The notes under the pieces: model-generated | The model's database searches: none | Told to the model about the DNA's origin: nothing | The model's input: only the letters and a program-made list of their open reading frames with translations | Position numbers and translations under genes: made by a program | Source of the DNA: Cyanophora paradoxa CCMP329 | Lineage: Eukaryota; Plantae; Glaucophyta | Assembly: GCA_004431415.1 (NCBI GenBank) | Contig: QPMI01000493.1 | Coordinates: forward strand, 181,731-245,730 | Direction: 5' to 3' | DNA length: 64,000 nt | In this document: one piece after another, positions 1-51,458 of the stretch | Numbering within the stretch: the first letter of the stretch is position 1 | Layout: every line of letters starts with the position of its first letter

Positions 1-3000
1 TCGGCAACAGCAACAAGGCGACCTCGCCCGGCGGTAACTTCCTGCAGGGCTCCGCCAGCATGCGCCTCGACCGCGCACTCAGCGCCCGCTCGAATTCCAT
101 CGCTGGCCATGGCCGCGCCGGCTCGATCTCTGGATCCGGCTCCCGGCCGGTGCGAGCTCGAGCGCGCGCGAGCGCCGCTGCCCCCGCTATGAATCGAGGT
201 CTCGATCGCCCCGCAGGGAGTGCACTTTGCGGTGCCCGAGGGGGAAGAGGCGGCCGATCGCGAAGCGCAAGCCAGCCACGCGGTGCGCCCGAGCCGTCTC
301 TCGAACTCCCGTCGCGTGCGGCTTACTCGCGGCTGCCCGCAGCCCCGGTCGCCCCTCGAGCCGGCCGCCTCCATCCGCTCGGCCACCGCCTCCAACCTCG
401 AGATCATCGTGGCGGAGGCGATGTCCGAGGCGCTGAGTGGGCACGTCGACATCGGCCGGCACGACTCGTTCTTCGACATGGGCGGTGCCCCATTAATATT
501 TTTGCGTTTGGTCGATTTCGCATAGAATATTTTTGCGCGCGCAGGGCACAGCCTGGCGGCGACCAAGTGCGTGGCGCGGCTGCGCGCGCGCTTCGAGGTG
601 GACGTGCGCGTGCCGGCCATCTTCGAGCACCCGACGCCCGCCGGCCTCGCCGCCCACGTCTCGGCGCTGCTTGCCGCCAAGTTCGGCGGCGGCGGCGGCG
701 CGGGCGGCGGCGCCGGCGCGCAGGAGGCGAAGCTCCCGACCATCGCCTCGCTGCCGGCGGGGCCGGACGGCGAGCGGCAGGCGCCGGCGAGCGAGGGCCA
801 GCAGCAGCTGTGGTTCCTGGCGCAGCTGCAGCCGGGCTCGGACGAGTACAACGTGCCGCTGCCGCTGCTCGTGGCGGGGCCGCTCGACGTCGGCCTGCTG
901 GCCCTCGCCGTCGGGCAGCTCGTCGCGCGGCACGAGGCCCTCCGCACGACCCTCGCGATGGACGGCGACCGCCTCGTACAGGTCGCCGCGCCGGCGGCGG
1001 CCGCCGCCGAGCGCGCGGCCGGCGAGGCCCTCCGCGTCCGCGAGGTCGCGCAGGCGTCCATGGACGACGAAATACGCGCGGCCGGCGCGCGGCCTTTTGA
1101 TTTGCAGGCCGGGCCCCTCTTCGGCTGCACCGTCCTGCGCGTCTCCGACACGTACTACGACGAGGTCATTTATCCATTTGCGAGTTTTGCTGCTGACGTT
1201 TATTGAGAGCTTTCCAGGCGTGCCACGTCGTGATCCTCGCCGCCCACCACGCCGTCATCGACGGGGCCAGTGCGCCCGCGCCTTCAATTTCTCGAGAGTT
1301 TTCCTCGCGCGCCGCCCGCGGCCGACGGTCTTGCAGGCCTGGCCTCGCTGCTCCAGGAGCTGGCGGCGCTGTACGGCGGCTACGCGCGGCTCGCGCGCGA
1401 GAAGGGCGCGCCGCCGGCGGTGCGCGAGGTCTGCGGGGGAAGCAGCCCGGCCCCGGCCCCGGCCATCCTCGGCGCCGCCCTCGGCTGGGCACGCGACATC
1501 GCGGCGGGCATCCTCGCGCCTGTGGCGGTGCAGTACGCCGAGTACGCGCTCTGGCAGGCCGCCTGCCTGCAGGGCGCCTACCTCGAGAGTGGCCTCGCCT
1601 TCTGGAAGAAGGCGCGCGGTCTTTGATTTTACTCTATTATAAGCACGAGAGTTTGCGGTCTATATTTTTACTATGCGGTCTAGGGCTTTACCATAAAGAT
1701 GACTTGCAATAACTACGCGGTCTTTTTCGCTTCTGACAGCTTGCGTGAGCAGACGCTGGCGGGCGTTCCCGCCATCGAGCTCCCCTACGACTTCGTGCGC
1801 CCGGCGGGCGCCCCGAAGGTGGCCGGCACGGCGCGCTTCAGCGTGCCGGGCGAGGTCATGGCGCTCGTCGACCGCTTCTCCCACTCGGCCAAGTGCGCAG
1901 ATTTCCGCCCGATTTCCGTCCGTCTGATGGCCTCGCCCGTCTGACGTCGACCGACGCGTCGCAGCTGCTCGCACTACATGGTCTTCCTCGCCGCCTTTGC
2001 CCACGTGCTGCAGCGCCTCGCCGGCGCCGACGACTTCGCCATCGGCACGCCCGTCGCGGCCCGGCCCCTCCCCGAGCTCGAGACCACCGTCGGCTACCTC
2101 GTCAACACCGTCGCCATCCGCTCCAAGTGCCCTTCCCTATCACAAACCCAGTCTGCGCGCCGCTCGGCTGAGTCTGTCCGTCCGTCTGTCCGTCCTCGCC
2201 ACGCCGCCAGGTTCGAGCGGTCGGCCACGTTCGCGGCGGCCGCGAAGGCGGTCCGGGAGGCGGCGCTGGGCGCCTTCGCCCACGACTACGTCCCCTTCTC
2301 CCGCGTGCGCATGCGCCCTATCTGCTAAATTAGAACTTTGTCGCGTACAGTTAGGCAGGAGCGAATCTATTTGAGGACGTGAGGCCTAGGCTTGGCATGG
2401 GTCCTGCCATAGTTGGAATTGCTCCAGCTTCGGTTTTCGCCGATCGCGAAATTTTGATTGGCTCGAATATTAACTTTGCGCGCGCAGGTCGTCTCGGCGG
2501 TGCAGGCGAACCGCGACGCAGGCCGCAACCCGATCTACCAGGTCCTCCGCTCTGCACTCGACCTTGGCACTCGTAGCTCGCTTTTCGTGGACGGCTGACT
2601 TTAGCGCCCGTGCAGGTAATGTTCGCGGTGGAGTCGTGGACGGAGCTGGCGGTGGGCGACGGCGACGGCGTCCTTCTCGACGAGGAGCGCGAGACCACCG
2701 CCGAAGTCCTCAGGTGCCTTCCACGTTTTAGTGATTTGGTAGAGATTACGCGTGTACAATTTACGCGTCCTCCGCGCAGCTACGACTTCGCCACGCCTAA
2801 GTTCGACCTGAGCCTGACGGTCGCCGACGCGGTCGGCGTGGCGGACGACCCGCGCGCGGCGGCGTGCAATCTGGAGTACCGCGCCGACCTCTTCTCGGCC
2901 GCCACCGCGCAGCGCATCGCCGAGCACTTCGTCGCGCTGCTTTCGGCCGCGCTGAAGGCGCCCGACGCGCCGCTGTCCCGCCACGCGATCCTGAGCGCCG

Positions 3001-6000
3001 CGGAGCACCGCCTCGTGACGTCCGACTTCGCGGACGGGAGCGTCCGCGACGGGGCCCTGGAGGGCGCCCCCTCGTGCATCCACACGGCCTTCGAGCGGCA
3101 GGCGCGCCAGCGGCCCAAGGCGCTGGCGCTCGTGCACGGGCCGCGCGAGGTGACGTACGGCGAGCTGGACGCGTGGGCCGAGGCCATCGCCGCGCGCCTC
3201 ACCGCCGCCGGCGCGCGCCGCGAGAGCCGCGTCGCCCTCATCATGGACAAGGCAAGCCCTCCACTTTTCCACATTTCCGCTCTGGCCGCTCACTCTTCCA
3301 TCTCTGCCAGGCCCCCGAGGCGATTGCAGCCATGCTGGGCACCCTGAAGGTCCGCCCTGCCCGGCCCGCCGCTCTGCTGATGCGATCTAAACTATTGTCA
3401 TTGCGCACAGGCCGGGGCGGCGTATGTCCCAATCGACCCCGCCACGCCCATCGACCGCATGCTCTACATCTTCGAGGCGAGCCCCGGGCGCCTGCTGTTC
3501 AGAACCGCTCCGACACGAGCGTCCTCAGGACTCGGGCGCGCGCTGGCTGCTCTCGCACAGCTCCGGCGACCTCCCGACGCGCGTGCACAAACCGGCCTCC
3601 GACGCCGGCGTCGAGGCTCGCGCGCCCCGCCGCGCCCCGCCTTCCCCTCAATTTCCGCTCATTTTCCGGCATGCAGGTCATTTTGGCGGACGCGATCCCG
3701 CCGGGGCTCCAGCGCCGCCGCAGGCCGGTGCCGGTGGAGCCGAGCAACCTCGCGTACTGCATCTACACCTCCGGTCCGCTCCGCTCCGCACTTTCGCTCG
3801 CTCGCGCTCACGTTTGATTTGTGCGCATGCGCAGGCACGACGGGGAGGTGCCCGGCCCTGGACTCAGCCCCAGCCCTCGCCGCTCCGTTGTCGGCCGCCG
3901 ACGCCGCCGCGCAGGCCCAAGGGCGTCGCGGTCGAGCACGAGGGCGTCGTCCGTCAGGCGAGCTCCAGCGGCCCTCGGCATGGTTGCGCTCGGCTGCTGA
4001 GCCGCCGGCGCCGCCGCGTGCAGGTGGAGGCGGTGGCGGGGCGGCACCTGGCCGTGGGGCCCGCGGACGCCTGGGCCCAGTTCTTCTCCATCTCCTTCGA
4101 CGGCTCGGTCCGCCCTCTATACCTTTAATACACCTGATAAATTCCATTAAGGCCAGTCGTTTTTTAACTTTAGCTTGCGCGTCCCCGCAGGTGGAGGAGA
4201 TCTACGGGGCCCTCCTCCGCGGCTCGCCCCTCGTCCTCGTGCCCAAGGCGAGAGCCCCGCCCCCGCCTCCCTCGCCGCCGCCCTCGCCTCTAACTTCCAA
4301 TCCGTCTCCAATCCAGAGCGTGGGCCTCTCGCCGGGGCAGCTCCTGGAGCTCGTCGCGGCCCGCCGCATCGCGGTGCTGGACATCCCCACAGCCTTCCTC
4401 GACGTCCTCTCCGGCGCGCTTTGTCCATTCTCACTTCAGATCATATAAAGAGCTTGCAAAGAGCTATAAAGATCAGATATTAATTTGGGGCGCTGGCCGC
4501 CTAGGCCACGATCGGCCGCAGCCCTGCTGACGCGTCGGTCCGCCGCGCTCTGCAGGCGAGCTGCAGGCGATGTCGGAGGGGAGCGTGGCGGCCCTGCGGC
4601 TGCGCCACGTCATCGTCGGTGGCGACCGGCTCCTCTCCCGCCAGGCGAGCGCGCCGCGCCGCTTGAATTTCGGATTTGAAAATCAAAACGGGCTCGCGGA
4701 CCCTGACTCCGGGATCCGGTCCGAGCAGGTTCTGGCGTTCGCGGCCGCCTGCAGGGGCCGCGTCAAGCTCTGGAACACATGTGCAGCCCTTTGCTGATCA
4801 TAGCTTTCGCCGTCCAGCCGTCCAGCCAGCATTAAACTGAACTGTGTTTTCTTTTGCGCAGACGGCCCGACGGAGGCGACGGTGGACTGCACCATCCGCC
4901 TCGTCGACGCCGAGCAGGAGGCCGCCTCTGAGGCTCAGGTGCGCCGTACTCTTTCTTAAGCCGCTTCTTCCATGTTTTGATTTTTATATATTTTCTTCCG
5001 CTCAGGTGGGCCGTATACGAATTCTTCCTCGCTTAGTTCGTGGCCATGGTTTGATTTTGGTTTCACGGTCTGCAGGGCCGCTGCACGATCGGGAGGCCCT
5101 TCGCCGGGCGCCGCCTCTTCGTCGTCGACAAGGGGCTCGCGCCCGTGCCGCCGGGCGTCTGGGGCGAGGTGCGAGGGCCGCAAAAGTCTGCTCTGCAGCT
5201 CGCGCCCGACGGTCGTGCTTCCGCGCCGCAGCTCCTCATCGGCGGCGACGGCGTGGCGCGCGGGTACCTCAACCGGCCCGAGCTCACCGAGGAGAAGGTC
5301 CCTACTTTTCCGGTCCAATTTCTTGGCCCCGAAATGAAAGCCCACGCCAGTTCTGCTGGGTGGACGTCGCGGGGCGGCCCGAGCGCGTCTACCGCTCGGG
5401 CGACGTCGTCCGCTGGCTCCCCGACGGCACCCTCGAGTTCCGTGGCCGCGCCGACACGCAGGCGCGCGCACACACTCACACCCTTTAGCTCTGCTTCGAT
5501 CCGCATCGTTTGTTTAGACGGGAGCGCGCGCAGGTCAAGATCCGGGGGTTCCGAGTCGAGCCGGGCGAGGTGGCGGCCGTCCTGCAGACGCACGCCGCCG
5601 TCCGCGCCGCCGTCGTCGTCCCCGCCGCCGACGCGTGCGCGAATTTCCGAAATCGATCGCAATTTCGGCGCTGACGGGGCGATCGCGAGCATGCGCAGGA
5701 GCGGCATCGTGTCGGGCCTCAACGCGTACGTCGTCCTCGACGATGCCGCCCGCGGCCAGCCCGAGGTCCTCTCTAGTTTCCTGCCACCTTCCTTCCTTCG
5801 CTTCTAATCGCCTCTCTTCTCAGGCGGCGCTGGAGGCGGAGCTGGAGGGGCACGCGAGGAGGACCCTGCCGCCCTACATGATGCCCGCCTCCTACACGTT
5901 CCTCGAGGCCTTCCCCACCACGGTCCGTCCGCGTTATGTTTCGTTCACTGTTTTAAAGATAGTCGTTGTGGCGTTCTTCCAATTGTACCTCGCTAAGATT

Positions 6001-9000
6001 CACCATTATATACGCTTAGATATTTGGCTTCCTGTTCCAAAGATGCCATTAAACCACTATGTTTTCAGATCGTGGGCAAGATCGACACGCGGGCGCTGCC
6101 GCCGCCGCGGCCCCGCGCCGGCGCGGCGGGCGCCGAGGAGGCGGAGGGCGACAGCGACGCGGGCGGCGCGGGCGAGGCGATGACGGCGGTCGAGGAGGCG
6201 ATGGCTGCGATCTGGCGGGAGATCCTGGGCGTGAAGAACATCCGCCTCGACTCGGACTTCTTCCTCCTCGTGCGCTCCCTCCGTCGTTCGAACTCTGTCT
6301 CGCCGTATCGATGGACGCTGCAGGGCGGGACGTCGATCGCGGCAGCGCGGTGCGTGAGCCGCGCCAACCGGGGCGGCCTCCCCATCGGCATCGTCGACGT
6401 CTTCGAGGCCCCCACCCTCCGCGGTTCGTGGCCGATCCACTCGAAGCCGCCATCAAAGTATTAGTCGCTGCAGCTGATTCGATCGCGTGCACAGGCCTCG
6501 CGGCGCGCGCGGCGTCGTCCGCGTCTGGCCGCGCCGGCCCCTCGGCGGCCGTCACCGGCCAGACCCTCCTCGAGGACGCAAAGGCAAGCGCAGCCCCTCT
6601 ATTATTTCTTCTGTTTCTTATGAGCCGTCCTCTGATTCCGCCGGCGCCGCAGGAGGCGGCGCGCCAGGTCGAGGTCCCCGAGGCGGCCCGCGGCGCGCTG
6701 CCGCCCGGGCCGCTGCGCCCTCTCCCGCGCCCCGGCGCCCGCCTCTCCGTCCTCGTCACCGGCGCCTCGGGCTTCCTCGGCGCCTTCGTCCTCCAGGTCC
6801 GCCCCTAATCTTAATGTTGATTCCTGTTTGATGCCCTCTAGGCGCACACTTGAAATTTATTATCGCTTGCATCGGACCTTCTCGATTAGTTCTGACCTTC
6901 TTGGTCCCGCAGGCCCTCCTCGACTCGCACGACTGGCCCGCCCGCCGCCCTCCACCTCGCTTCTGATCTCTATCCTTTCTTCTGAGCCTCCTCCCCGCAG
7001 GCTGGACGCCGTGTGCCTCGTGCGCGGGGCGGACGCGGCGGCGGCGCGCGCGCGGCTCATCAAGGCGATGTCGGGCTACGGCCTCTGGCGGGCCGCCTAC
7101 GAGCCCCGCGTCCGCGTACTCAACGGCTCCATGGAGGCAGTGCGCCCTTATTATATCGGGCTGATATTAGCTTATTGCATTCTTCTGAGCTTCTTAAATC
7201 GCTCTTTAGATTGCCCATTATATTTCCTGAGCTCTAGATCTCGATTTGCTCGCATTCGTCTTCTCCACCGCCCTTCCCTCTCCTTCTGAGCCTTCTGAGC
7301 CTTCTGAGCCTCAGGCTCGCCTCGGGCTCGGGGCGGAGGAGTACGCCTCCGCGGCGGCCGAGGCCGCCGTCGTCTACCACGTCGCTGCCGAGGTCAGATT
7401 CCGAGATTGTCTTTCTTAAGTTTATAGAAATGGCCCGAGGACCAACGTTAACGTTGACACGTGCATTAGCTAGCTGCTAGCTCATTCTGAGATTCTCTCT
7501 TTTGAGCCTATTAGATTCAATGAGCGATTACATTACATTTCGGGACTCGTTGAATCGCTCGTTCGATGGCCCGCCGCCCTCGAACTCCGCCGCGCGCAGG
7601 TGAACCACGTGAAGAGCTACGCGTCGCTCAAGCGCTCGAACGTCGCCGGCGCCGTCGAGGTCGCGCGCTTCGCCGCCGCCGCCGCCGCCGCCCGCGGCGC
7701 CCCCGTCCCCCTCCACTTCGGTGCGCACGCCCGCGGACCGTCTCAGAGTCTGCCGCGCGCGCGGGCGTCCAACCCTCGCCGCCCGACCTTCGCCGCCAGT
7801 GTCCACGATCTCGGTTTACTTCTAATATAAACTTCTTCAACACCTTCTATAGCTTGTCTTTCAATTTCATCTCTGACCATGACCTCGCTGGCAGTGTCCA
7901 CGATCTCGGTGTACGGCCTGACGCTCCCGCGCGGCGTCTCGCTCGCGTCGGAGGCCGCCCCGCTCGACGAGTACGCCGACCAGGCCGCCGCCGCCAACAA
8001 CGGGCGAGTCTTCTTTGCTTCCGAATGGCAACCTTAACCTTATTTAGATTGGACCTTTGGGGACCGAATGGGCGGCGAAAAAAGCTAGAGTCTCTTACTT
8101 CTCTTGACGGGCTCCCAATAAGGGCGGCGCAATAATGGGGAGTCTCTTGCTTCTCTTGACGCTCCCTTTTCCCTCGCAGGTACCTCTCGAGCAAGTTCGT
8201 CGCCGAGCAGGCCATGCACGAGGTGCGCCGCACTCCCTTCCCTTAGCCTCCGAGCTTAGCGGTTCTTCCATTCGGTCTGCACTCTTGCAGCTCGTGCATT
8301 CAGCAATTATTTAAATATCGCCATTCTAGATCTTGAGTGCATGCTTTCCGAGTTGACCGACGCTCCGCTTTCGGATCCAGCTGGCGGCGCGGGGCCTCCC
8401 CGTCTGCGTGTGGCGCCCCGGGCTCGTCTGCGGGTCCCTCTCCGGCGGGCCCACCGCATGGAACGCCCTCGACACGACCAGCCGCGTCATCAAGGCACCC
8501 GATCCCCCGTCCTAAGCCGTCCCAGTCGAACATAACGGGGGGGCGCGCGCGCAGGGGAGCGTGCAGTGCGGGGTGTACCCCGAGGAGGGCGAGGGCGAGT
8601 CGGGGACGCCGCAGCCGAGCCCGGCGGACTTCTGCGGGCGCGCCATCGCCTTCGCGTCGCTGGAGCGACCGGCCCGCTGCGCCGGCGCCACGCACAACCT
8701 TGTCTCCTGGCGCCCCGAGGCCGCCGTCAGGACGGGTCCCATCTACGCTGAGCTCCGCGTGCGCTCTGAGAATTCTCGAACCGGCTAGGGCTTCCTATAT
8801 AGATATATAGTGGATTTATAGAGCGCTTTACACAATTAATTGGCGGCTTTGGTTGAGCCGTCTCTGCTCGTAGGCGCGGGGCTACAAGCTCGAGCCGGTC
8901 TCGCCCGACCACTTCTACACGGCGGTCCTCGACCAGGTGCGCGATTCTTTGGTCGTGCACATGCTCTCTCCTTCAGAAGGTATGACCGGTCCGCGCGCAT

Positions 9001-9344
9001 GCGCAGATCGAGAACGAGGAGGAGGGCACCGGCGGCAAGGACAACGCGCTGTACCCCCTGATCTCCTCCCTTCGCAACATCTACCGCCTCACCTCGTGCC
9101 CCCCGCCTCCTCGCACTTCGAATAATTGAAGCCTGCCCCCGTCTCACTCCGGCGCAGCGCTGGGAGCCTGACGGCCTCGCGGGACGCGCCCGCCGCCTCC
9201 GACGGCATCGTGTACGGGACCGCGGCGCTGCAGGGCGCGCTGGAGGGCTCGGGCGTGGACGTGCCCCCCTACGGCGGCGCGGCGGCGTGCGCGGCCGTCG
9301 ACTACTTCGTCGCGTCGGCCTTCGTGCCGCCTCCGGCCCTCTAG
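1..9344 (+). CDS. Multi-exon non-ribosomal peptide synthetase, 5'-truncated by the window edge; visible domains T-C-A-T-R (terminal thioester reductase)
   Basis: Splicing by eye restores the canonical motifs. T1: DSFFDMG|GHSL (intron 485-544, Ser codon 550-552). C: PASEGQQQLWFL, LVARHEALRTT, HHAVIDGAS, GYLVNT. A: YTSG|TTGR|PKG, FDGS, NT|YGPTE, GE|LLIGGDGVARGYL, YRSGD, GRADTQ|VKIRGFRVE, YMMP, GKID. T2: FFLL|GGTSI. R: TGASGFLG, G|YLSSK. Stop TAG at 9342-9344. Confidence 0.95.
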
Positions 9345-16434: not shown

Positions 16435-16940
16435 GTGAGCGCATCGTGATCCCAGTTTCCCTGCGGAAGGAAATTATTAAGGAAGCGCATAGCGGCTTCG
16501 GATCGGGACACGGCGGTTATCATGCAACGAATAATCGACTTCGAAAGAAGTGCGCGAGTTTCTCACCTCGATGGGAATTAAATTGGTGATCATGCCAGCA
16601 TATACGCCGCAAGCGAAAGGTGTGCTGGAACGCGGACATCAGACGCTGGAAGCCAAAATCCGCAGCTTAGCTAGTGATCGTAAGACGCACTGGACACGTG
16701 TGGTCGGCGAGGCACTGCTAGCTATGCGCACGACGGTTTCTCAAGCTACGGGATTCACGCCGTTCCGGCTCATGCGCGGATATGATCCTTATCTCCCGAT
16801 CGATCTACACTACGCGTCACTGCCTACGCTCGCAGAGGGCGCGCCGCGGCTCACGGCAGTCGAGGCGCAGACAGCAGCGTTTGGACCCGCAAAGACTACG
16901 GTGGCGGCCGACGCAGTGGACGAAGATGCGGTCTGGATCC
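16435..16940 (+). pseudogene. Integrase fragment (partial zinc-binding region fused by deletion to the second half of the catalytic core)
   Basis: IVIPVSLRKEIIKEAHSGFGSGHGG followed by PAYTPQAKGVLERGHQTL...WTRVVGEALLAMRTTVSQATGFTPF. Confidence 0.85.
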
Positions 16941-17481
16941 GCGATTCCGCCTGTACGAACGGCTGGCGCTTAGTAGCCAACAAGCACAGCAGCGCGGGAC
17001 GTATGCGTACACATATGCGATGCCGCTGGCGTTCGGACGCAACTGCAGCAGCAGCGGCTATGATATATATAGCTGGTATAGCTAAGCAGCTCACTTTTAC
17101 GAGCCCTGGCCCCGCGCTTCTGAAGCCGTCTACACGTCGACCCCCTAAGCTGCGAGGCGCACAGGCAACTGCAGCGGGCGGCGTTGAACACGCTGAGGCC
17201 GATATGGGCACAGATATCGAAGGCGATATGCATACGTATACGCGTCAAATGCATAGACAGGCACAGTTAGCCGAACAGCATATGCAGGCAGCGGACTCGA
17301 CCAGCTCGAGCGGCAATGCCACAGCTGCAGCTGAAGCTGAAGCTGGTACTAGTACTGATAACAATGCTAGCCTTGGCCTTGGCAGCTCTAGATCTGGGGA
17401 TGGCATGCGCAGTGCGGTGCCCGCGCACTCTTCAACTACCACTAGTACTGCTAGTAGTGCGGCACGCGGCCCGGAAATTAA

Positions 17482-20400
17482 CTAGGGGCCCGGCCGCGTT
17501 TGGCGCGCCGGGGGTGCAAGGGGGGAGTCGGGATCTAATGAAAGAGTAATAGTGGCACGAACATGCACGGGGCAGATGTAGATCGACCCCGGCCCAGCGC
17601 GCGCGGCAGGTTGAAGTAGTAAAGATAGACACAGATTATACATGATTGAAAAGAATAGAAAAGGGCTGATATGCAGACGCTGCGATCTAACCGAATAAAG
17701 AAAAGCCTGAATGAAAGGCCAGATTCAGCGCACTGTATATGAAAGATTGTTCTGGAGCGGAAAAACGCTGCGCATCATTTTTGTTCGCGCGGCCTACCCC
17801 TAACCCTGAACAGCTGGCTAAAAGATGATGGTGTTGTCTGCAGAGGGCTCGCCGTAAACATATATAGGCTATCCAGGCCTTCCGAAGTTCTGAGGGGGTC
17901 GAGGCGGAAGTCGCCCATGGGGGTGAGCGGCAGCCAGCGGCGGCGGTCCTGAAGAGAGCCGTCTTGCGAGAGCATGGTGAGGCGGCCCGCCGCTTCGAGC
18001 GCCCGCAGAGCCACGCGGCTGGCGCGCTGCTCGCTCCCGCCGCGCATCTGGTAGACAAGGTCTTGAATTTCGATATCCGCGAGGCCGGCGTCACGGAGGC
18101 GCTTGAGGACTCGGACGAGTTGCTGCTGCACTCGGACTCGACTACATCTTCCGCAGCCTCTGCGTTGCGGGCAACGTCACTTCATCGATCGGGTCCAACA
18201 ACGCAGCACAAAAATTACCTCGGGCGTGTGCAGCCTCGTGCTGGCGAAGAGAAGGAGCCGACGGACAGACAATAGAGCATGAGACATGTCGGAAGGTACA
18301 GTCTGCGGCGAGCACTTCGCACGCTCGATGTGCCGGTCGAACGAGAACTTGTCTGTACATGTGAAAAGCCGTTTGCAGGTGCTGCACGACATCTGGGGCG
18401 AACGCACTGAGGGATAGCATTAAGGACCAGGTGCCAAACGGCGCACCGCTCTCCAACGCGGCCCGGGATGTTGGAAACTGAGCCGTTGCACTTCCCGGCT
18501 CACCGACTATTCCGCTACTCGCAATACGCCCGAGAGCGAATTTCGAGCATCTGGGCGATGGGCGGGCGCCGCCGCGGCCACGGGGCTTGAGTCGACGCCA
18601 GCGTGATTGAGATCGTTTTCAATATTAATCGAAGCCTATACACGATCAGCTGACCCGCCATTGCAGCGCCCGCGTTTTGAGGAAGGTTCCTGCGCAGCAT
18701 TTTAGCGATTTGAAGAAGTCTCTTGAGATTCATTACGCACTGCGCACGGCGATGGCGGGAAAGCCTGCAGCAACACGTCATTCACATTATTCGGGCTGAC
18801 TCTATCGAGATCGCAAACCTGATTGATTTGACGGGTCGGCGCTACTCTAATGTTCTTCTCAGACAGTTGAAACGCTCCTGTCTCAGCGTGCGGCGGTTGA
18901 AACGCTTCAGGCTGAGCGTACACGTCAATGCGGCCGCCCGGGCCGGGAGATACATGTCAACTAACGACAGGGTACCGCCAGAGGAAGAGGCGACGATAAG
19001 CCTGTGGGAGGGCTTCTGTGGTCTTCAGCTGCGGCGATCTGTGTATGCAATATGAACGGAACAGGGACACTGCAGTTGCACTGCCCCTGTTGGAGGGGAA
19101 GGACCTCTAAAGGTTGAGCAGGAAAGTTCACCCCTGCAGCTGGTCACGTTAGCTTTGAGCCGAGATAGTGTGGACTAGTGTGGAGATAGATAGTGAGCCG
19201 GTGCTTTTCAGAAGTGGGGGAGCTCGAGGACGAGATCTAGCTCAGCGGAGGACTAGATCTTGAGAAGCGCCGCCGCCCGCCGCGCCTCCGCCGCGGCGCC
19301 CCGCCCTGCGCCTCCGCCCTCCGCCCTGCCCGTCGAGACGCGCCGCCGCCCGCCGCGACTCCGCCCCGCCCGGATAGCCGCTCCGCCGCCCGCAGCGCCT
19401 CCGCCCCGCCCGGCGAGCTGCTCCGCCGCCCGCCGTGCCTCCGCCCCGCCCGGCGACCCGCGCCGCCGCCCGCCGCGCCTCCGCCCCGCCCGCGAGCCGC
19501 GCCGCCGCCTGCTGCGCCTCCGCCCCGAGGAGCGGGAGGAGCCCGGCGGCCGCGCCGCCGCGCCGGCGTTGGCCGGCTTCGGCGCGGGCGGAGGCTAGGC
19601 GCCGGCGCAGCGGCAGGCGCTTAGCGTACTAGCGCGGACGCGTACGAGGAGTGCAGCAAGGCGGACGGGCGTGCCGTCAACGGAGGCGGAGGCCGAGGTC
19701 TTGGAGGTGATGTGATGCTTGCTAGCGGCTCAACCCGGTCGATTGCATGCGGTTGCAATTGCAAATGCAAGACTGAGGGTGGCAAGCATGAGTCATGCAA
19801 CCGGACCCTTCCCCCGCGGCAGAGGAAGCGACGAGCACAGCTGGGCAGCATGCGCACCGATGGAACAGATGCGATGTACATGTTGATGCCCAGCTGCGAC
19901 GCTCGCTGCTGCGCTTAGCGGGTTCGCGGGAAGTGAGATCTAGAGGGCGGCGGGGCGGTCGCGATCGAAGGCTGCAGCTGGAATCGGCCGGAACCTGGAG
20001 CGGCCGGAATCGGTGCCTAGCTATATAGGGCGGCGCGGCGGTGGACGAGTTCGTACCTGGTGCGGCCGGAATCGGTGGAGCGTGGAGCGTGGCAGCGCCG
20101 ACGGCAGCGCCACACGCGGCGCCGGCGAGCGCACGAGCGAGCGCACGAGTGAGGCTCGAGTGGCCCGGCCCGGGCGAGCGATCCATGCAGCAGAGCAGAA
20201 CCTCGGCGCGCACTCGCCGTGGTCGGCGCGATGTCGACGGACGCCACACGCGGAAGTCCGGCAAGCCGATACGGTGTCGAGCAGAGCTGAACTTCGCTTT
20301 CGGATATGTCAGGCGGCAGGTCCGCACCGCGCCCTCGTCCGCCTCGGCGCGCCATGGCAAGAACGTAGTACTGCGTACCCAGCAATCGGCTCCCGACTCG

Positions 20401-24860: not shown

Positions 24861-25990
24861 CGATCCGCGCCTCAGGGCCTACCGTAGTACTGGGCCCCGG
24901 GCTGCCTTCGAGGCCGCCCGCGCCCTAGGCCTCGCCCAGCCCTTCCTCGTCCACTGCAGGCGCTACTAGGCTAGCTCATGATCAGCGGCTCGTGAAATTT
25001 AAACCGCACCCAGCTTAGGCAGCTTAGTCTAGGCCGTGCAGTAGGCTCTAGATCTAGATCGCTAGTCTAGGCCGAGCAGTAGTGGCCGATCGGCCGCCGC
25101 GCCGGACGGTATGCGCGGGGGCGCGCGCGCGTGGACTCCGCGGCCGGGAGCGCCGCGGCGAAAGTCGAGCCGCTGAGCGCTAGCGCTCGCCGAGTCGAGC
25201 GCGTGCACACATGCGTTGGAGCCGGCCATGGCACGCTGCGCTATATATAGCTAGCGGCCCAGCAGCTGAGCTAGCGCTAGGAGCGGCCTGCAGCCTACAG
25301 GGAGCTCGCGATCGGGGACGGGAGGCCTATACAGCAGTGCGCATGCGCACTGCGATCTAGATCTAGATCTAGATCTACAGCGGCCCGGGGCCGGACGCTG
25401 CCGCGGGGCCGGGCCGGTATGCGCGCATGCGCTATACGCGTACGCGTACGTGTACTTATGCGTACATATACATGTACACGTGCACGCGCGCCTAGGCCGC
25501 CGGGCCTGATCCGATGATCATGATATCTAGAGCGGAGCGCCGAGACGAGAGCTAGCGCCAGCTGCATAGCTAGCGTGCGTTGGGGCTGGCATGCAGCCGT
25601 AAACTGCGCGCGTGCACCGGCGCTGTGTTGAAGCTGAAGGCGCGGGGGTACGCGAATAGCCAGTTTCAGCGCAAGGCCAAGCTTAAGCAGTCGGTGCCGC
25701 GGCCGCCCCGGCGGCCAGCTCCGGAGCGATTGCACAGCATTCAGAGCACGCCGCGACTGCGCCCGCGGGCCGCGCATCGAGCCAGATTCAAGTCTCAAAC
25801 CGTCCAGCCCAGCGGCCGCGCTCCGCTAGCTTTGGTGCGGGCGCGCGCGTCAGCTCGCTTAGCTAGCGAAGCCGAGCCGGGAGGGGCCCAGTCTGCTGGC
25901 CGGTTGGGCACTCGGAGCGGGCGTCAAGGGCCTCAGCTCAGCCGGGACCGCTAGCAAGCGGCGGCGGAGCGGAGCGGCCGAGCGAGCGCG

Positions 25991-28900
25991 ATGTCAAAGA
26001 CGGACGGGAAGGTCGCGCCGCCGGAGGAGCCGCGTGCGCCCGTCTCGGACGCCAAGAGCTACATCGACGAGAACCGGCGCTGCCGAGACGTGCTTTGGCT
26101 CGTCCTCTTCATCGCCTTCTGGATCGGTGCGCCCCGCCCGGGCGCCCCGCCCCGCCCGGCCCCAGCGCCCCGCCCAGCCCGCCGACCTGCTTCCGCCGCC
26201 TCGCTCAGGGATGTGGGTCGTGGCCGGATTCGCATTCAACAAGGGGGATCCCAGCAAGCTCCTGTATCCCGTAGACGGCGCCGGGAGCGTATGTGGCACA
26301 ACATTCCCCGACCACCGCTTCCTCTTCTGGCCGGTGCGCCGCGCCGCGCCGCTCGCCCGCCGGCGCCGCGCGCCCCGGCCGACGCTGGCGCGCGCGCGCG
26401 ACCCGCCGAGCAGAACCCGACGGACGTGCTGGACTCGTTCTGCGTGGGCGCCTGCCCTGAGGCGCTCAGCTTCGTTAACCTCGTGTGCCCCCCGGGTCTC
26501 GCCCCCTCCGCCGGCCTCGCCGGCGCCGCCCTCGACCTGCTGGTACATGCGCCGTCGACACGGCACTAGGCAACGCCATCGGCCCGCCGTCCGGCGCCGG
26601 CAACGCCACATCCCCTCCCCTCCCCCTCCCCTCCGCCCCCTCCCCTCCCCGACGTTCTCCCCTCCGGCTCCTCCCGGCCCTCCTCGGGCTCGTCAACGCC
26701 ACCTCTACCCCAGCCCGTCCATATTCCCTACCCCGCCCTCTTGATCACCCCAACCCCCGCCCCGTCCGCCCTCGCCCACCGCCCGTCTGTTCCCCACTCC
26801 GACCCCCGCCGCCGCCGGCAACGGGACCCTCCCGCCCCCGACGCCCCTACCCTGCCCACCGCCCTCCCACCAATGCGACGGTTTCTCCCGCTAATTCGAC
26901 GGCGTCCAACGCGACCGTACCCCCCTCCTCTTCCTCCCCCTCCGACTCCTCCGCCGTCTCTTCGATTCTGAACGGCGGGCGCCTCTTCGGCTCCGGTGAC
27001 GTCAACGCGTGCGTCCGGCGGTACCTCTCCGGCGACGCTTCGCGCTGCTCCATCTCGTACCCCACCACCAACGGTGAGCACGTACCCTCTCTCCGTTCTC
27101 CACCCCCCCCCCCCCCCCCTAATTGGCTCTGCAGTCTTCGGGCGGTGCCTCCCCTCCCCGCGCTACAGCTCCCTCCTGGGGGGTACGTCGGTGCAGAACC
27201 TCATGAAGGCGTGCAGTACCCCATTCAGCCCCCTCGTCCTCTGTGATGACGTACCCCCCGCAGGACGGCTGGAGCCAGCTGAACTCGTACCTGGCCGACG
27301 TGCAAGCCGCCTGGCCGGTCGAGGCGCGTACCCCCCTCCCCGCTCACTCGCGCGTTGCGTACCCCCGGACTGATTCCCGTACCCCCTGCAGCTCGTGATG
27401 GGCCTGATCGCCCCCCTCGTGCTCGGATTCGTGTACCTCCTCCTCCTCAAGTACCTCGCCGGCATCATGGTGCGCCGTCCCCCCCCCCCCTCCCCTCTCC
27501 CTCGCCCCACCCCCGTTCTCCCTCCAACGGGCGCCTCCTGAACCCTGCACCCTCAGGTCTGGGTTACGATCCTCCTGGTGATCGGCGCCCTTGTCGGGGG
27601 TACCCTGGTCTTCTTCTTCAAGGCCGGGTACATCGGCCAGAACGAGCTGAACACGATCGTTCGCCCCCTGCCTTTCCTCGAGTCCTTTCGCATGCCCCGC
27701 CGACCTTCTGCCAGGGGTACGACCGGATCACGAGCGAGCCGCTGCCGTCGGCGCTGGACCCCTCCTCCGACCGCCGCGAGGTCATGAAGGCGCGCTCGCC
27801 GTACCCCCCTCCCCTCCATCCCCCCCTCCCCCTGCCTCTCACCCTTCGCCAGGCGCTGGCGTGGACGATGGTGGGGGTCACGGCTGTGGCGCTCCTCGTG
27901 CTGATGGTCATGGGCCGCCGCATCGCCATCGCCGTCGGCGTACGCCCCCTCCACCCCCCCCCACCCCCCCCCCCACACACACACACCTTCCCCCCGGGGC
28001 CCGGCTCTGCCCCCACCCCCCACCCCACCCCCCCCCACCCCCGGGCCGGCTCCGCACCCGCCTGGGAGGGCGCCACCCCCCCCCCCCCCCCCCCCCCCAC
28101 CCATCCATCTCGCCTAGACAGACTCGACACCCGACACTCTCTGCCCTCGGCGCCCCTCTCTCCCCTCACCTCCTCCGCATACCCCCCCCCCCCCCAGATC
28201 GTGAAGGAGGCGGCGGACGCGGTGCGGGCGCTGGTCTGGGTCGTCTTCCTCCCCGTCTGGGAGTTCGCCGCCATCGCCGTCTTCTTCGGTGCGCGAGTGT
28301 GGGATGGGACGGGCGATGGGCGGTGGGACGGCAAAGGCAACGCGAGAGGCTGCCGGCCCGGGGCGGGGGGGTACAGGGGGCTAGAGAGCAGAGGCGCCCG
28401 CTAGGGCCCGCCCGCCGCGAGGCCGCGAGGAATCAGCTCGAGGCTGGCTGTCGGCCGGGCCGGGCCCCGGTTAAAGGGGGTCTCTTTCCGGCCGAGCTCG
28501 GTAGCCGCGGACGGGGCCCCGCTCCAGCTTCTTCCCCCCCTCCCCCCCCCCCCCCTTCCTCCTCCCCTTCCCTTCCCCCGCCCCCCGCCCTCCCCCATTG
28601 CTTCCCTCCTGCCCGCGTGCCGCTCACCCCCTACCCCCCCTACTTCGTTCGCAGTGTACTGGGTGTACGTCTTCGTCTTCCTCTGCTCCGCCTCCCAGTA
28701 CGACCCGCGAGCCGCCAGATGAAGTGCGCCGTACCCGCCCGCCCGCCCCTCTCCTTTCCCGCTTCTCCCCCCTCCCTTTGGCTCTCGCTTCCTCCTTCTC
28801 CTCTCCTCTCCCCTCGCCCCTCCCCGCCCTCCCCGCCCCGCACCGCCCCGCCGCACCGCACGCCCTCTCTTTGGCTCTCGTTTTCTCCCTAAACGCCCCG

Positions 28901-29673
28901 TCCTGGGGCGGTCGACTCGTCCTCCTTCTCTCCTTCCTCCCTCTCCTCTCCCGTCGTTTGCCTCGCCTCTGAACGGCCGGCAGGTACGACAACACGACGC
29001 GGGGCGCCATCGCCTACCACGTCTTCGGCCTCTTCGTGCGCCCCGCCCCGCCCCCGCCCCGCTTGCTCTGCTCTGCTCCGACCCGCTCCTATATCCCTCG
29101 TCCCTCTCCTCCTCCTATATTTTATAACCCTGTTCCTCCCCCTCCTTTTTCTAGATCTAAATCATACGCGGCCGAGGCTGCTCCGACGCTGTTAGCCGCT
29201 GTAAGCGCCGCGCCCCGTTGTTCCCGCCTCAGCTTGGCCTAGCCTGATCCCCCCCTCCCTCCTGGCTACCTAGCCCGCCCCCCCGCCCCCCCGTACCTAA
29301 TTACAAGCCCGCGCCGCCCCCGCCCCGCCCCGCGCAGTGGACGGTGCAGGTGGCGGAGGCCTTCTGCACGACTACCATCGCGGGGAGCGTCGCCACGTAC
29401 TACTTCACCCGCCCCGGCCCCGACGGCTCCAAGGTCTGATCTATTAACAACAAACCAGATCTGTTAGCAAACTAGATCTGTATTTATATGTTCGGCCTCC
29501 TTCTCTAGATCTGTGCTACTTCACCCGCCCCGGCCCCGACGGCTCCAAGGCGAGCACCAACTATAAATGTACTAGATCTGTTAACAAGCTAGACTTCTAT
29601 TTATATAGTCGGCCTCCTTGTCTAGATCTGTGCTACTTCACCCGCCTTGGCCGGGCTCCAAGACGAGCGAGGG

Positions 29674-29708
<35 letters not shown>

Positions 29709-31415
29709 CTTAGAATCATCATCCTTGAGCGGCTAGCGCTCCCCCTAGCGCTCCTTCCGGTCACTGCCCCGCATTAGAATCATCGTCTTAGAGCGGCCAG
29801 CGCTCCACCAGGGCCCTCTCTCGGCGGCCCCCGCCCCGCCTCGCCCCGCCGCGCCCCGCCTCTGACCCTCCCCGCAGCGGCTGCCGCTGGCGCCGATCCT
29901 GCAGTCGCTCTACCGGACGGTCCGCTACAGCCTCGGCTCCCTCGCCTTCGGCGCCTTCCTCGTCGCCCTCGTCCAGGCGCGTCCTCTCGAGTTCGCTTTG
30001 ATTTCCTCTTACTTTAGATTCCACTTTAGGTTCCTCTTTCCTAGCTCTTTCCTAATTCGGTTTAACATAGGCGCTCTAGATCTAGTGCTATTTAAGAGTG
30101 CCTTCCTCGTTTTGAATTAAGAGAGCGAGCCCGCCGCGAACCGCTTTGAATTCGATTTCCACTTTTCGGCCGACGTCCTCCCTGACTCGCTTGCTTGGTC
30201 CGCGCAGTGGGCGCGCGCCGTGCTCTCGTACGTGCAGCGGCAGAGCGGCCTGGCGCAGAGGAACGTCGTCGTCAAGTACGTCTTCGTGTGCCTCAAGTGC
30301 TGCCTCGCCTGCCTCGAGCGCTTCCTCAAGGCCATCACACGCCGCGCCTACATCATGGTGCGCCGGGGAATATATGGATAAGAGCTCGGCGGCGGCGGCC
30401 GGGATGTCATGGATAACCGTTGAACGCAATGACAGCTTTAAATCGCGCAATAGAACTTCCGGAACCGGAACCTTTACTTGGACCTTTCTAGAACCGGTTT
30501 CTTTCGAGAGGGCTTCTCAAGTTCCGGGCCTCCCGGCTCACGCCGCCGGGCCGCGCCAGATCGCGATGCACGGGGACTCGTTCTGCGGGGCGGCGCAGCG
30601 CTCGTTCGCGCTGGTGCTGGCGAACATCCTCCGGGTGGCGGCCGTAGGCGTCGTTGGCGACTTCCTCATGTTCCTCGGCAAGCTCGCCATCGTCATCTCG
30701 TGCGCGCCGCCCCCAAGCCCGAGCCCGAGCTCGAGCTCGAGCTCGCGGCCGCTGAGCTAGTGCACGCTAGTCCTTCTATATATCAACTCGTCTCTAGTTC
30801 ATATAAACAACTTAAGCTTATCGCGACTACAGTACAGCTAGTGGCTCAGCTAGTTCCGCCTTTCTCCTTTTCATGCGCGTCTTCTGCTGACATCCCGCGC
30901 TGCCGCGGGCAGGTGCGGCTTCCTGGCGAACCTGTGGCTGGCGATGGACGGGACGTACCAGCCGTCGACGGGCTCGCGCCCCGTCTCGAGCCCCGTGCTC
31001 CCGCTCGTGGTCGTCTGCGTGGGAGCCTTCGCCGTCGCGACGGCCTTCATGGCCGTCTTTGATGCCGCCATCGACACCATCCTCCTCTGCTTCTGCGGTG
31101 AGGAGGATTTCTTGTCTAGAACCCTATAGCTAAGAGAGCGCCTGGAACTGATTTTGCTTCGACATTTTATGGTCATAGCACCTTAGATTGCTTCGAAAGC
31201 TTAGATTGCTTCGAAAGCTTCTAATAATGAAATCTCGATGCTCTGCAGAGGACCAGGAGCGGAACAACGGGATGGACCGGCCCTACTACGCCAGCTCCCA
31301 CCTGCGCCAGTTCCTCGCGAACTCTCAGAAGTACGGGCCCAGCGGGGCAGGGGGCGGGGGCGGGGCCAAGGCGCCCGTGGCCCCCGCGCCGGCTGCGGCC
31401 CCTGCCAAGGCGTAG
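25991..31415 (+). CDS. Choline transporter-like protein (CTL/SLC44 family), multi-exon
   Basis: RRCRDVLWLVLF, GDPSKLLYPVDGAGSVCG, RYSLGSLAFGA, KCCLACLERFLKAITRRAYIM|IAMHGDSFC, VGDFLMFLGKL, AIDTILLCFC|ED...DRPYYAS; ATG at 25991, TAG at 31413-31415. Confidence 0.93.
29400..29662 (+). repeat. Triplicated exon end plus intron start (~116-bp period) in the CTL gene
   Basis: ctacttcacccgccccggccccgacggctccaagg is identical at 29400-29434 and 29516-29550, with a degenerate third copy near 29633. Confidence 0.9.
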
Positions 31416-35786: not shown

Positions 35787-38700
35787 CTACTGACGGAGGC
35801 GGGCAAAGAAGAGGGTCGCCGCCGCCGCGAGGGTCGCCGCCAGCGCGGACGCGGCGAGCTGGAGGCCCGCCGAGAAATAGGGGACACCGAGAGCGGAACT
35901 GTCGGCCAGCAGCGCAAACTGTAACATCGCAGTCAGTTGCAGTCTTCACATCTTTAAATTTGTGGAAAGTTCTGTTTTCAATTATAGTTGGGATCGCGGA
36001 GACGCGTGCACGGACCGCGGTGAGGTGGTTGCACGTGGCCGTGTACGTCCCGCTGCGTGTGCTCGACTGGCTCACGGCGCTGCACCCGTCCGTCTTCCAC
36101 GAGCCGTCGGCGTCCAGCCAGCGGAGGGCGACGCCCTGGCCGGTGGAGAGGGAGCCCGTGGCGGGGATCTCGAACTGGATGCCGCCGGGGAACTGGGTGA
36201 TCTGGCCGGCGAGGGACGCCGCCGTGACCTCGATGATAGAGGAGAGGAACGTGTAGCCCGCGGGCGGCTTGACGAGGGAAGTCGCCAGCTCGGAGACAGA
36301 GGCCTGAAGTCGACGCCAGAGCCGCTCGAGTTAGCGTTGTTTTAATTATAATTTATGAATACGCGAAAGCCACGAACCTGGAAGTCAGCGCCGCCATTGG
36401 CGTTCGCGGGGAAGGTGATCTGAGGACAAGCCTTAGCTTCGAATTCTTCCCGGCTAACAAGCAGCGTTTCTAGATTCAACAGGCGTCCGATTTACATCTA
36501 GAATTTAATTGATGGCGAGTTAACGTTGGGGTGGAGCGCGCGCGCAACGCACCACGGCATCGCGAGTCGCGCCCGCCGAGCGGAAGGTGAGCGCACGGGT
36601 GCTCGAGCAGACCTTGAAGTTCCTGGGGCCGGCGTCGCTCGCGGCGCGGCTCGGGTCCTGGTCGCCGCAGGCCGTGTTGCCGCTCAGTGTGATCTGGGGC
36701 GAACGTAGCGAGGAACGGTCACGATCATGATCAGGCTCGGCCGGCGCCTGCAAAAAGCGATTTCGATTTACCTTCGCGGACACGTCGGCGAGAGCTTTCT
36801 GAGTTTCCTGGCGGACGCTTGCAGCCGCGGCGGAGTTGGGCGGAAGGGCCGCGACGAGGCCGGCGAGACTCTGCTGAAGAGCCTGCATGTACCAGAGCGC
36901 GCACGCGTGCGTGTCAGTTCGATTTGGCGAAGAATGATCGCATGCCGAGATTCACGTAGCTATTGCCCGGCGCCGGCCCGCTGTTGACGTCTATAGCGAG
37001 TTCATCGGTTTTCGTGATTGATTATATATGTCTGGCCACAATTAAACTAAATTGATAGCAGCTATTGCATTGCGCAAGAAAAAGCTCGAAAGCGAAGTGA
37101 ACTCACCGCAGCATTCACGCCAGGTGTGGTGGCCAGGTTCTGAGTGCACCACCAAAGATCAATTAATGCGGAGATGGATTTCGAAGGACCGGACCCTTCC
37201 CAGCTGTATATTAGCCTTTTGTGTCCTAATTATACTGTGAGCGCGCAAGTGCCGCAGTGCCGCACACAATAAGCCGTTGAATAGCTAGATCTTAGATCTT
37301 AAGCGCATGCATATGCGCAACAAGCTTAAGAAATAAAAGCGGACCGGATTCTCCTTGATAACCTTGAGCAGGAGCTGCGTTCCCTGAAGCGCTGATGCCT
37401 CCTGCGGGGCGCAAGTAAACATAAGAATTCGAATAGCGATTGAAGAACCGTCGCGATCGGATCATCGGATGGGGGATAAATATTGGACGCACCGAAAGGG
37501 CGCCGGTCTTCGTCGCGACGGGCGCGACCGAAGAGAAGAAGTTGACGAGGGCGCCGGCGGTCTGATAAATAAACGAGATCCCTCAGCACAAAATTTAAGG
37601 GCGCGATTCTTCATTAATTTCAGCTTTTGAATTCGTTTGCGGGCGCACGGCAGGGTCCTTGAGATCGACGCCGGACTTGGCCGCCTCCGTCGTGACGGTC
37701 TGCGCGTGCAATTAATTAAGCTATAAGCTGCCATTGATTACGTATTAATTAATGTAACTGTTTAAAGCTGCTTTAAGCTTTAATTAATTTGTAATTAATG
37801 TAATTGATAAATACGTAGAACTCCATTAAATCTGTGTCAACGTTGGCGCGAATGGCAGACCGTCATGGCGGTGGAGAGGGCGCCGGAGAGCTTGGCGAGC
37901 AGGTCGGCGTTCGTCTGGCGGAGGCCGCGGCGGAGGGCGGTGCCCGTGGCCTGGGAGTAGTAGGTCTTGAGCGACTCGATGTTCGCGAGGATCTTGGCTA
38001 TCTTGTCCTTGAACGACATTGAGGTGTCCTAAGTGCCCGTGCATGTGCAACGTAGCGAGTCAGAAAGGAGGCTTTGCACCCAAACAATATCAGTAGACAT
38101 ACAGCAGTAATTTCTTCCATCTGCTTGTTGAAGGTGGCGAGCATATCCTGTCCACAAGAATCAGTTACGAAGTGCATGCGCGTTGGGACTGGATTTTTCA
38201 AAGAAACAGAGAGCTCGAGACGCACATCGAACTGGGCCGCGGCGGGCTTGGACGCGTCGACGGTGGGCGTGACAATGACCGCGTTGGGGATGGCGAAATT
38301 CGTCGAGAGGCCGTTCGCGTCCTTCACCTTGACGGTGAGCGACGAGGAAACCGACCCGCCGGTGCTCTGCGAAAACGTGCACGTGTTAGAAAACAGCATT
38401 GCCGACCGGCGGCCGGTGGAGTCGATATCGGCGCGCTTACAGAGGGGAAGAAGAACCCGAAGGTCGCATCGGGCGAGTCGCGCGCCAGATCGCTCGAGTA
38501 GCCCGTGCCAGACACGGTGTAGCTGCGCACGCCCAAGATTCAGACAGGTTTTAGAGGTACACGTGTTTCTTTGTTGTTTTAGCTTTGCACGAGGCCTATA
38601 TATAGAATGCGATCGCGAGCGCATAAAAACATCGCACGTGAGAGGGAAGGCGCTTGCGCCCCAGCCCGTGCATGTCACCTGTACATTTCCGTCAGACAAA

Positions 38701-50379: not shown

Positions 50380-51458
50380 GAAGACCGGCTTGCACGGCGG
50401 GCGAACGTCCCGGCCTCTAGGGTCGAGTTCTACCCACCGCTGCGGGGCAGCGGCCTCGGCGGCGACCGTCTCAGGCTCGAGCGGGGCGGCGTCGTCGGAA
50501 GCCTGCCCGCGGGCAGAGGGGCGACCTCGAGCCCGCGGCGCTGGCTTGGGGTCCGGGGGACCGGCCGAACGCGGATCTGGTGGCGAGCAGTCTCCGGGGA
50601 GAGCGAGCGTCGGCGCGGAGGCCCGGGAGGCGGCTCGCCCTCAGGGTCCTCCGGCTCCCACTCAATATGAATCGGCACCGGCCGATCCGAGGGGTCGACC
50701 GGGGAGCGCCAGTGGCGCGTGTTGTACTCATCTCGAGGCTGCCGCCTCAAGGCGGGGCCGCGAGGGAAGAGCGCGTCGGGATGCAGGGCCGCGGCTCGGC
50801 AAATCCCTTGGCGCCCCACCGACGGGGCCCGGTTTCCGAGCGCTTCGGGACTCGCTCCGCAAGAGCGAGGGGGAAGCCGTCAGCGTCGCAGGCGTCGGAG
50901 GGACAGGCCCTTCCGGCAGCGACTCGTCATCGATCTCGCCCGAGGCCTCGGCCTCTGCGTGAGCGTCCTCTAGCAGCGCGGCCGGGCGCCCAGGTCGCCC
51001 TCAGGGGCGTCGGGCATCTCCGCGTCCGAGGGAGCCTCGCGCTCCTCGACAGCGGGCGCCGGGCCCGGCTCTCGTCGTTTCGGGGGCGGCGAGACCGACT
51101 CTGGCGCGGGAGGCGCGAAGCGCTCTGGGGCGGCCCGCGCTCGCTTGCGCGTGGCGGCGTCAGTAGCCGAGGCGGAGGCCTTGGCCTCAGCGAACCCAGC
51201 CGACGCAGCAAGCTTGGCGAGCTCGCGGGGCAGGCGTCGCGGCGCGCGCTCTGGCGGCGGGGGCTCGGCGTCGGAATCGGTTTCCGCAGCACCGCCAGCC
51301 TCACCCTCAGGCTCGGGCGCGGGCGCTTCAGGGGCGCCGGCGTCGGGCTCGCCTCAGGAGCACTGGCTGGCACAGGGGCCGCGACTCCTCCTCTGCATAA
51401 GAGGAGCGGCCCGGCGGGAAGAGGGGGCGCTCGCAGGCGCCGCCCGGGCGCTCGGCGT

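Follow-up and report, generated by a model that had tools for sequence, protein, structure and literature searches.

The first 9,344 nucleotides of a 64,000-nucleotide stretch of the genome of the glaucophyte Cyanophora paradoxa CCMP329 (assembly GCA_004431415.1, contig QPMI01000493.1, positions 181,731 to 245,730, forward strand; the whole stretch is called the window below) contain the 3' third of a real, heavily spliced gene for a nonribosomal peptide synthetase (NRPS), whose start lies upstream of the window. In this segment, where the G+C content is 65-70%, short stop-free pieces with NRPS motifs are found instead of any long open reading frame (ORF). Pfam matches on these exon pieces follow one another in the order PP-binding plus Condensation (positions 526-1203; E 2.9e-7 and 4.3e-18, respectively), Condensation (1945-2325; E 1.5e-16), Condensation plus AMP-binding (2577-3344), AMP-binding_C, PP-binding and, three times, NAD_binding_4. 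The plus strand encodes carrier (T), condensation (C), adenylation (A), T and reductase (R) domains in this order, with domain matches far beyond chance. A fully intronized NRPS terminus of the type C-A-T-R had been proposed earlier from the letters of the sequence (hereafter, the original prediction), and both the Pfam order and a stop-free model of 45 exons bear this out. Each motif named at the time (GGHS, HHAVIDG, A1-A10, GGTS, TGASGFLG and YLSSK) is present, and the premature stops that had been singled out as a sign to the contrary do not occur in the 1787 amino acids of the spliced model.

A representative-library search with the exon at window positions 547-1164 retrieved a protein of 3756 amino acids, P0036, which is found in EukProt only and forms a singleton cluster. 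Residues 2004-3756 of this protein are matched exactly by the translation of GT/GC-AG exons in the window (located by tblastn and then by exact threading); P0036 is therefore the public gene model of this locus. Our curated splice model combines this exact threading with three exons of the R domain that were positioned by coordinates. Its window part comprises 5361 nucleotides free of stops. All 44 introns have GT/GC-AG borders, the donor being GT in 31 and GC in 13 (30% GC-AG). Median lengths are 69 nt for introns and 94 nt for exons, and the G+C fraction is 0.75 in exons (0.96 at third codon positions, GC3) and 0.56 in introns. The introns on either side of a 13-nt micro-exon measure 61 and 67 nt. 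A codon-bias dynamic-programming gene finder missed this exon and mis-called several GC-rich stop-free introns, and was dropped. Some junctions are ambiguous on sequence alone, for example 1611/1753, 3957 versus 3951 and 6577 versus 6583. Exon pieces or P0036 served as queries in all database searches; the joined curated model was used only for coordinates, motifs and alignment to retrieved proteins. Contamination by bacterial DNA was considered and rejected because the gene holds 44 introns of the spliceosomal type.

Over its full length, P0036 has the layout (degenerate ketosynthase, KS)-acyltransferase (AT)-acyl carrier protein (ACP)-C-A-T-C-A-T-R, as judged from Pfam and a motif scan. The AT domain carries GHSAG, C1 and C2 carry HHIAIDG and HHAVIDG, and the specificity pocket of A1 reads DAWLTGVVVK; the Pfam AMP-binding match to the protein has an E-value of 8.4e-158. 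In P0036, Pfam recognized no ketosynthase domain and the motif scan found neither a DTACSS-like nor an HGTGT motif. The upstream modules, whose retrieval the original prediction had recommended, are thus supplied by P0036 as AT-ACP-C-A ahead of T1 of the window. The linker between A1 and T1 (window 3-400; P0036 ~1830-2098) is a low-complexity segment of ~270 amino acids rich in Ser, Ala, Gly and Arg; it lies far above the usual length of an A-T linker and could conceal mis-called exons.

The public model appears defective in the last domain. P0036 jumps from position 6796 to position 7600 and omits three exons, two of which give colinear NAD_binding_4 matches (profile positions 25-71 and 72-104) that continue in a third piece (97-127); the 23-nt exon among the three was placed by frame and splice sites alone. 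Judged by these matches, P0036 is wrong in the R domain and the public protein is missing part of the Rossmann fold, an error relevant to any cloning or expression of the gene. Two 69-nt stretches retained in P0036, 4248-4316 and 6584-6652, are probably GC-AG introns wrongly kept; excising the former restores the 43-residue spacing between positions 235 and 278 of the A2 pocket. Within the segment skipped by P0036, intron 36 contains, at its 3' end, three tandem copies of a 9-nt unit (7281-7313) that extend into the acceptor.

Table 1. Features of the NRPS gene in the window (window coordinates)
Feature	Position	Strand	Remarks
Megasynthase gene, 3' part	3..9344	+	45 exons, 44 introns, stop TAG 9342-9344; P0036 residues 2004-3756 threaded exactly
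T1, carrier of the preceding module	415..687	+	GGHSL, Ser codon 550-552; intron 485-544 inside; PP-binding E 2.9e-7
C2, condensation, ~9 exons	790..2882	+	Active-site motif HHAVIDG at 1245-1265; three exon pieces match Pfam Condensation
C-A junction and A1-motif segment, exon 12	3018..3251	+	Up to 82% protein identity over 40 residues to module 1
A2, adenylation, ~19 exons	3075..6116	+	Motifs A1-A10 in order, including the A10 Lys; AMP-binding and AMP-binding_C
Micro-exon, 13 nt	3835..3847	+	Codes TTG(R) within A3 motif YTSGTTGRPKG; needed for exact threading of P0036 and an intact A3
A2 pocket codons, first five	235 D 4099-4101; 236 G 4102-4104; 239 E 4194-4196; 278 D 4380-4382; 299 I 4612-4614	+	
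A2 pocket codons, last five	301 G 4618-4620; 322 T 4777-4779; 330 V 4882-4884; 331 D 4885-4887; 517 K 6078-6080	+	
69-nt GC-AG intron (probable)	4248..4316	+	Retained in P0036 as a Pro-rich insert of 23 aa; opposite a gap in module 1
T2, carrier	6204..6556	+	GGTS, Ser codon 6333-6335; core motif split by intron 6270-6323; PP-binding E 3.2e-5
R, terminal thioester reductase, 12 exons	6758..9341	+	NAD_binding_4 on exon pieces; in P0036, E 4.1e-19
R motifs	TGASGFLG 6758-6781; VSTISV Thr motif across intron 7720/7895; YLSSK 8181-8195	+	
R-domain exons skipped by P0036 (6913-6935, 7001-7139, 7315-7392)	6913..7392	+	Frame kept, GT/GC-AG borders; two match NAD_binding_4

The solved chains closest to C2 are those of Txo2, Txo1 and TycC6 (E 2.8e-50 to 2.5e-45). 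Among solved structures, A2 is nearest to bacterial A domains, LgrA included, with fungal PsoA well behind. For R, the closest solved relative is the myxalamid reductase MxaA (PDB 4u7w, E 1.9e-23), in alignment with which the Thr (VST), Tyr and Lys (Y..SK) are conserved. Sequence relatives of R reach only 27-33% identity, in a T2-R database search dominated by carrier-domain matches. With its cofactor motif and Thr/Tyr/Lys kept, the domain looks catalytically competent, as had been anticipated.

The residues lining the A2 pocket were identified in a hidden Markov model (HMM) alignment of 1272 bacterial A domains from retrieved proteins together with A1 and A2. The anchors were FDxS, the 43-residue spacing, xxGGE/D, NxYGPTE and GK, and the GrsA numbering was assigned through them rather than by direct alignment to 1AMU. 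The code obtained, DGEDIGTVDK, reproduces exactly the one in the original prediction, and its reading as a pocket for a basic residue is supported: the code falls in the Lys/Arg group. Eight of its ten positions agree with the Lys code DAEDIGTVVK of MxcG and AmoF, and the score is the same against the Lys code DGEDHGTVVK, Lys(12), and the Arg code DTEDIGAVDK of WbpA (PMC12283262 supplementary tables). The Arg cluster has the consensus D-[AV]-E-D-[IVL]-G-A-[VI]-[TD]-K (PMC12283262). Besides the paralogue A1 (46.5% identity), the whole A domain nearest to A2 among the 1272 belongs to a Longimicrobiaceae metagenome-assembled genome (46.7%) and carries the MxcG code. These features make a basic substrate, lysine or arginine, likely for A2. 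The two cannot be separated by the pocket code because T322 favors Lys and D331 favors Arg.

These findings lead us to propose, with a probability of roughly 0.6, that the window encodes the last module of a hybrid megasynthase with the layout (degenerate KS)-AT-ACP-C-A-T-C-A-T-R, that this module adds a basic residue and releases the chain reductively, and that the two NRPS modules were duplicated within the lineage. An acyl group would be loaded on the ACP and joined by C1 to the first residue. A2 would adenylate lysine or arginine and load it on T2, whereupon C2 would couple the T2-bound basic residue to the acyl-aminoacyl chain on T1. Finally, R would cleave the thioester reductively with NAD(P)H to yield an N-acyl dipeptide whose C terminus is lysinal or argininal. 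One could envision a further reduction to the alcohol, as carried out by MxaA and MxcG. At a more general level, the NRPS terminus is real and probably functional, and it belongs to a known type; its host is unusual.

Several points weigh against this proposal. The combination of G236 with D331 is found in none of the tabulated Lys or Arg codes, and D278 together with D331 also occurs in codes for Gln and Glu. No instance of DGEDIGTVDK or a near variant was found in the literature searched. For NRPSs of eukaryotes in general, substrates are poorly predicted by the pocket code. In the A-domain tree, A2 pairs with its non-basic paralogue A1, and therefore phylogeny lends the substrate reading no support. 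As for the released product, aldehyde and alcohol are indistinguishable here because sequence cannot tell a two-electron from a four-electron reduction. Finally, published tools could not predict the amino acids used by this NRPS (PMC7073580).

Alternatively, the module may be real but A2 may take Gln, Glu, a modified residue or some other substrate that is not basic or not proteinogenic, in which case no lysinal or argininal would be made. The Gln/Glu codes DAQDLGVVDK and DAKDIGVVDK have D235, D278, G301, V330, D331 and K517 in common with A2. We regard this alternative as clearly the less probable, because the Glu and Gln codes that combine D278 with D331 lack E239. The pair E239 and D278 occurs in tabulated Lys, Arg and Orn codes and is not seen in the Glu table; Gln(1) has E239 but Y278. 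Moreover, the nearest whole-domain neighbors of A2 apart from A1 carry DAEDIGTVVK, DAEDVGSVVK and DTEDVGTICK.

A different objection would be that the gene is a relic, either silent or in decay, unexpressed or mis-spliced and without a product. The singleton status of P0036, for which the protein collections searched contain no close orthologue, would fit such a view, as would the disagreement between P0036 and the curated model at several junctions and the abundance of transposable elements in the downstream DNA. A decaying gene would, however, be expected to show frame breaks, whereas the 45 exons are stop-free over 5361 nt, the catalytic motifs are all intact, GC3 stands at 0.96 and 44 of 44 introns have GT/GC-AG borders. 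We therefore consider decay improbable.

Still less probable, in our opinion, is that R acts as a non-redox Dieckmann cyclase and releases a tetramic acid, in the manner of the R* domains of fungal hybrids of polyketide synthase (PKS) and NRPS. The layout of these hybrids, with a PKS-like loader, then NRPS modules and an R domain at the end, is the one found here, and PsoA is among the weak PDB matches. R* domains are not known to carry the catalytic Tyr. The R domain of the present protein retains the Tyr and Lys of YLSSK as well as the TGxxGxxG motif, and it matches best a reducing enzyme, MxaA. Furthermore, an active KS, as in the fungal enzymes, is absent: without KS catalytic motifs, P0036 has no evident means of supplying a beta-ketoacyl chain. 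The kinship with MxaA itself has limits, in that bacterial NRPS R domains reach at most ~33% identity and the substrate predicted here is peptidyl, whereas that of MxaA is a polyketide thioester.

Least likely of all is a myxochelin-like pathway to a catecholate siderophore, with C-A(Lys)-T-R as in the myxobacterial myxochelin NRPS MxcG, since, for all the shared architecture of the last module, the 8/10 agreement in pocket code and the rank of the MxcG model (NF038078) as second-best NCBIfam match, the 879 bits scored, a figure summed over two modules, fall far short of the cut-off of 2300, the module is fused behind AT-ACP-C-A-T, and the 55 kb downstream hold no gene for an aryl carrier or for dihydroxybenzoate (DHB). 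This part of the original prediction finds no support: MxcG is a free-standing single module supplied from an aryl carrier protein, whereas the present one comes after another NRPS module and an AT-ACP loader in one AT-ACP-C-A-T-C-A-T-R protein. What the two enzymes share is the order of the terminal module and, by prediction, reductive release; their pocket codes differ at 2 of 10 positions, as many as separate A2 from the Arg code of WbpA.

Other families were compared in the same way. An identity with LYS2, the alpha-aminoadipate reductase of the order A-T-R, was rejected: the TIGR03443 model scored 490 bits, its cut-off being 1030, and the protein contains two C domains. Grouping with LYS2 was one of the outcomes that the original prediction had recognized as fatal to its thesis, and it did not occur. 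Dipeptide aldehyde synthetases of the type of AusA, the aureusimine synthetase, share part of the layout, their A-T-C-A-T-R core corresponding to P0036 residues ~1320-3756; the NCBIfam model NF047350 gave 812 bits, under its cut-off of 2500, and the present protein starts with AT-ACP-C rather than with A. This additional AT-ACP-C predicts an N-acylated chain, which would presumably block pyrazinone formation. The predicted chemistry has analogies elsewhere. Spumigins, leupeptin and aeruginosins are peptide aldehyde inhibitors of proteases with a C-terminal argininal, and the product suggested here would likewise be a short peptide, capped at the N terminus, whose last residue is basic and reduced. 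Aeruginosins are NRPS products. No cyanobacterial protein is prominent among the best database matches of the present gene.

The two NRPS modules of P0036 align end to end with 37% identity (BLASTP, module versus module), and A1 and A2 are sisters in the A-domain tree with a support of 1.0, a pairing to which the extreme GC-driven composition shared by the two may add some attraction. The end-to-end alignment and the sister relationship therefore indicate that the modules are paralogues that arose by duplication within this lineage. Similarity between them is uneven. At the C-A junction of exon 12, it rises to a peak of 82% (against P0036 ~1300-1385, encoded outside the window), which contrasts with 20-40% in the C domains and suggests either a later exchange, by gene conversion or at a recombination boundary, or strong constraint.

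The close database relatives of the gene are all bacterial, at 38-47% identity, and belong to Longimicrobiaceae, Thermoanaerobaculia, actinobacteria and myxobacteria; many are GC-rich, so that amino-acid composition in common may raise the identity. The search with exon 547-1164 returned only distant fragments: identity was 34-42% where the greater part of the query was covered and rose as high as 61% where a third was. No eukaryotic relative appeared among the database matches, and the tree contained no eukaryotic reference set. Conserved motifs, from which a horizontal acquisition had partly been argued, say nothing on this matter by themselves, and both the codon bias and the GT/GC-AG introns of the gene are of the host type. 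With these relatives in view, horizontal acquisition is plausible.

It is tempting to speculate that a glaucophyte uses an anciently acquired NRPS of bacterial type, whose module was duplicated in place and which became fully intronized, to build an N-acyl dipeptide aldehyde that terminates in lysinal or argininal. Taken as a whole, this scenario is doubtful. If it were true, the compound would be a protease inhibitor of the leupeptin or spumigin type directed against grazers or parasites, and for no NRPS product of Archaeplastida algae would a gene have been identified earlier. Glaucophytes are among the earliest-diverging primary algae. To our knowledge, few eukaryotic algae possess NRPSs, and no product of such an algal enzyme is known.

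The gene had probably entered the literature before. In a survey that found NRPSs in 7 of 32 species, C. paradoxa was credited with one NRPS having two C domains and an incomplete 5' end (Shelest et al. 2015, PMC4661987). A later study likewise listed one NRPS with two C domains, described the product as "likely a tripeptide" and considered the amino acids unpredictable (O'Neill 2020, PMC7073580). Two C domains in a glaucophyte is also what P0036 offers (HHIAIDG and HHAVIDG), and the gene of the window is probably the single C. paradoxa NRPS of both surveys. The novelty claimed in the original prediction was accordingly too high. What is new here is the corrected exon structure, the complete R domain, the loading part and the prediction of a Lys or Arg substrate; the surveys gave no R domain, loading module, exon structure or substrate. 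Because there are two A domains and an AT-ACP loader, we favor an acyl-dipeptide over the tripeptide proposed in the second survey (PMC7073580). The apparently single glaucophyte NRPS would in this way receive a predicted product class, acyl-dipeptide aldehyde or alcohol, in place of a tripeptide of unpredictable amino acids.

No tailoring genes were found in the 55 kb downstream of the NRPS gene, a region in which low-complexity GC-rich DNA is present. A choline-transporter-like gene lies at ~25900-31100 on the plus strand, with Pfam Choline_transpo matches on two exon pieces; a block at 26-30 kb with 70% G+C, a strong negative GC skew and Pro-rich frames interrupts or precedes it. A weak GPS motif (G-protein-coupled receptor proteolysis site) at 36013-36276 on the minus strand has an E-value of 5.9e-4 and is under the Pfam cut-off. 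An integrase-like ORF at 16535-17482 on the plus strand has no Pfam match; it is the second of its kind in the window, the other being part of a Ty3/gypsy retroelement at 49282-52586 on the minus strand with matches to RVT_1, RT_RNaseH, Integrase_H2C2 and rve.

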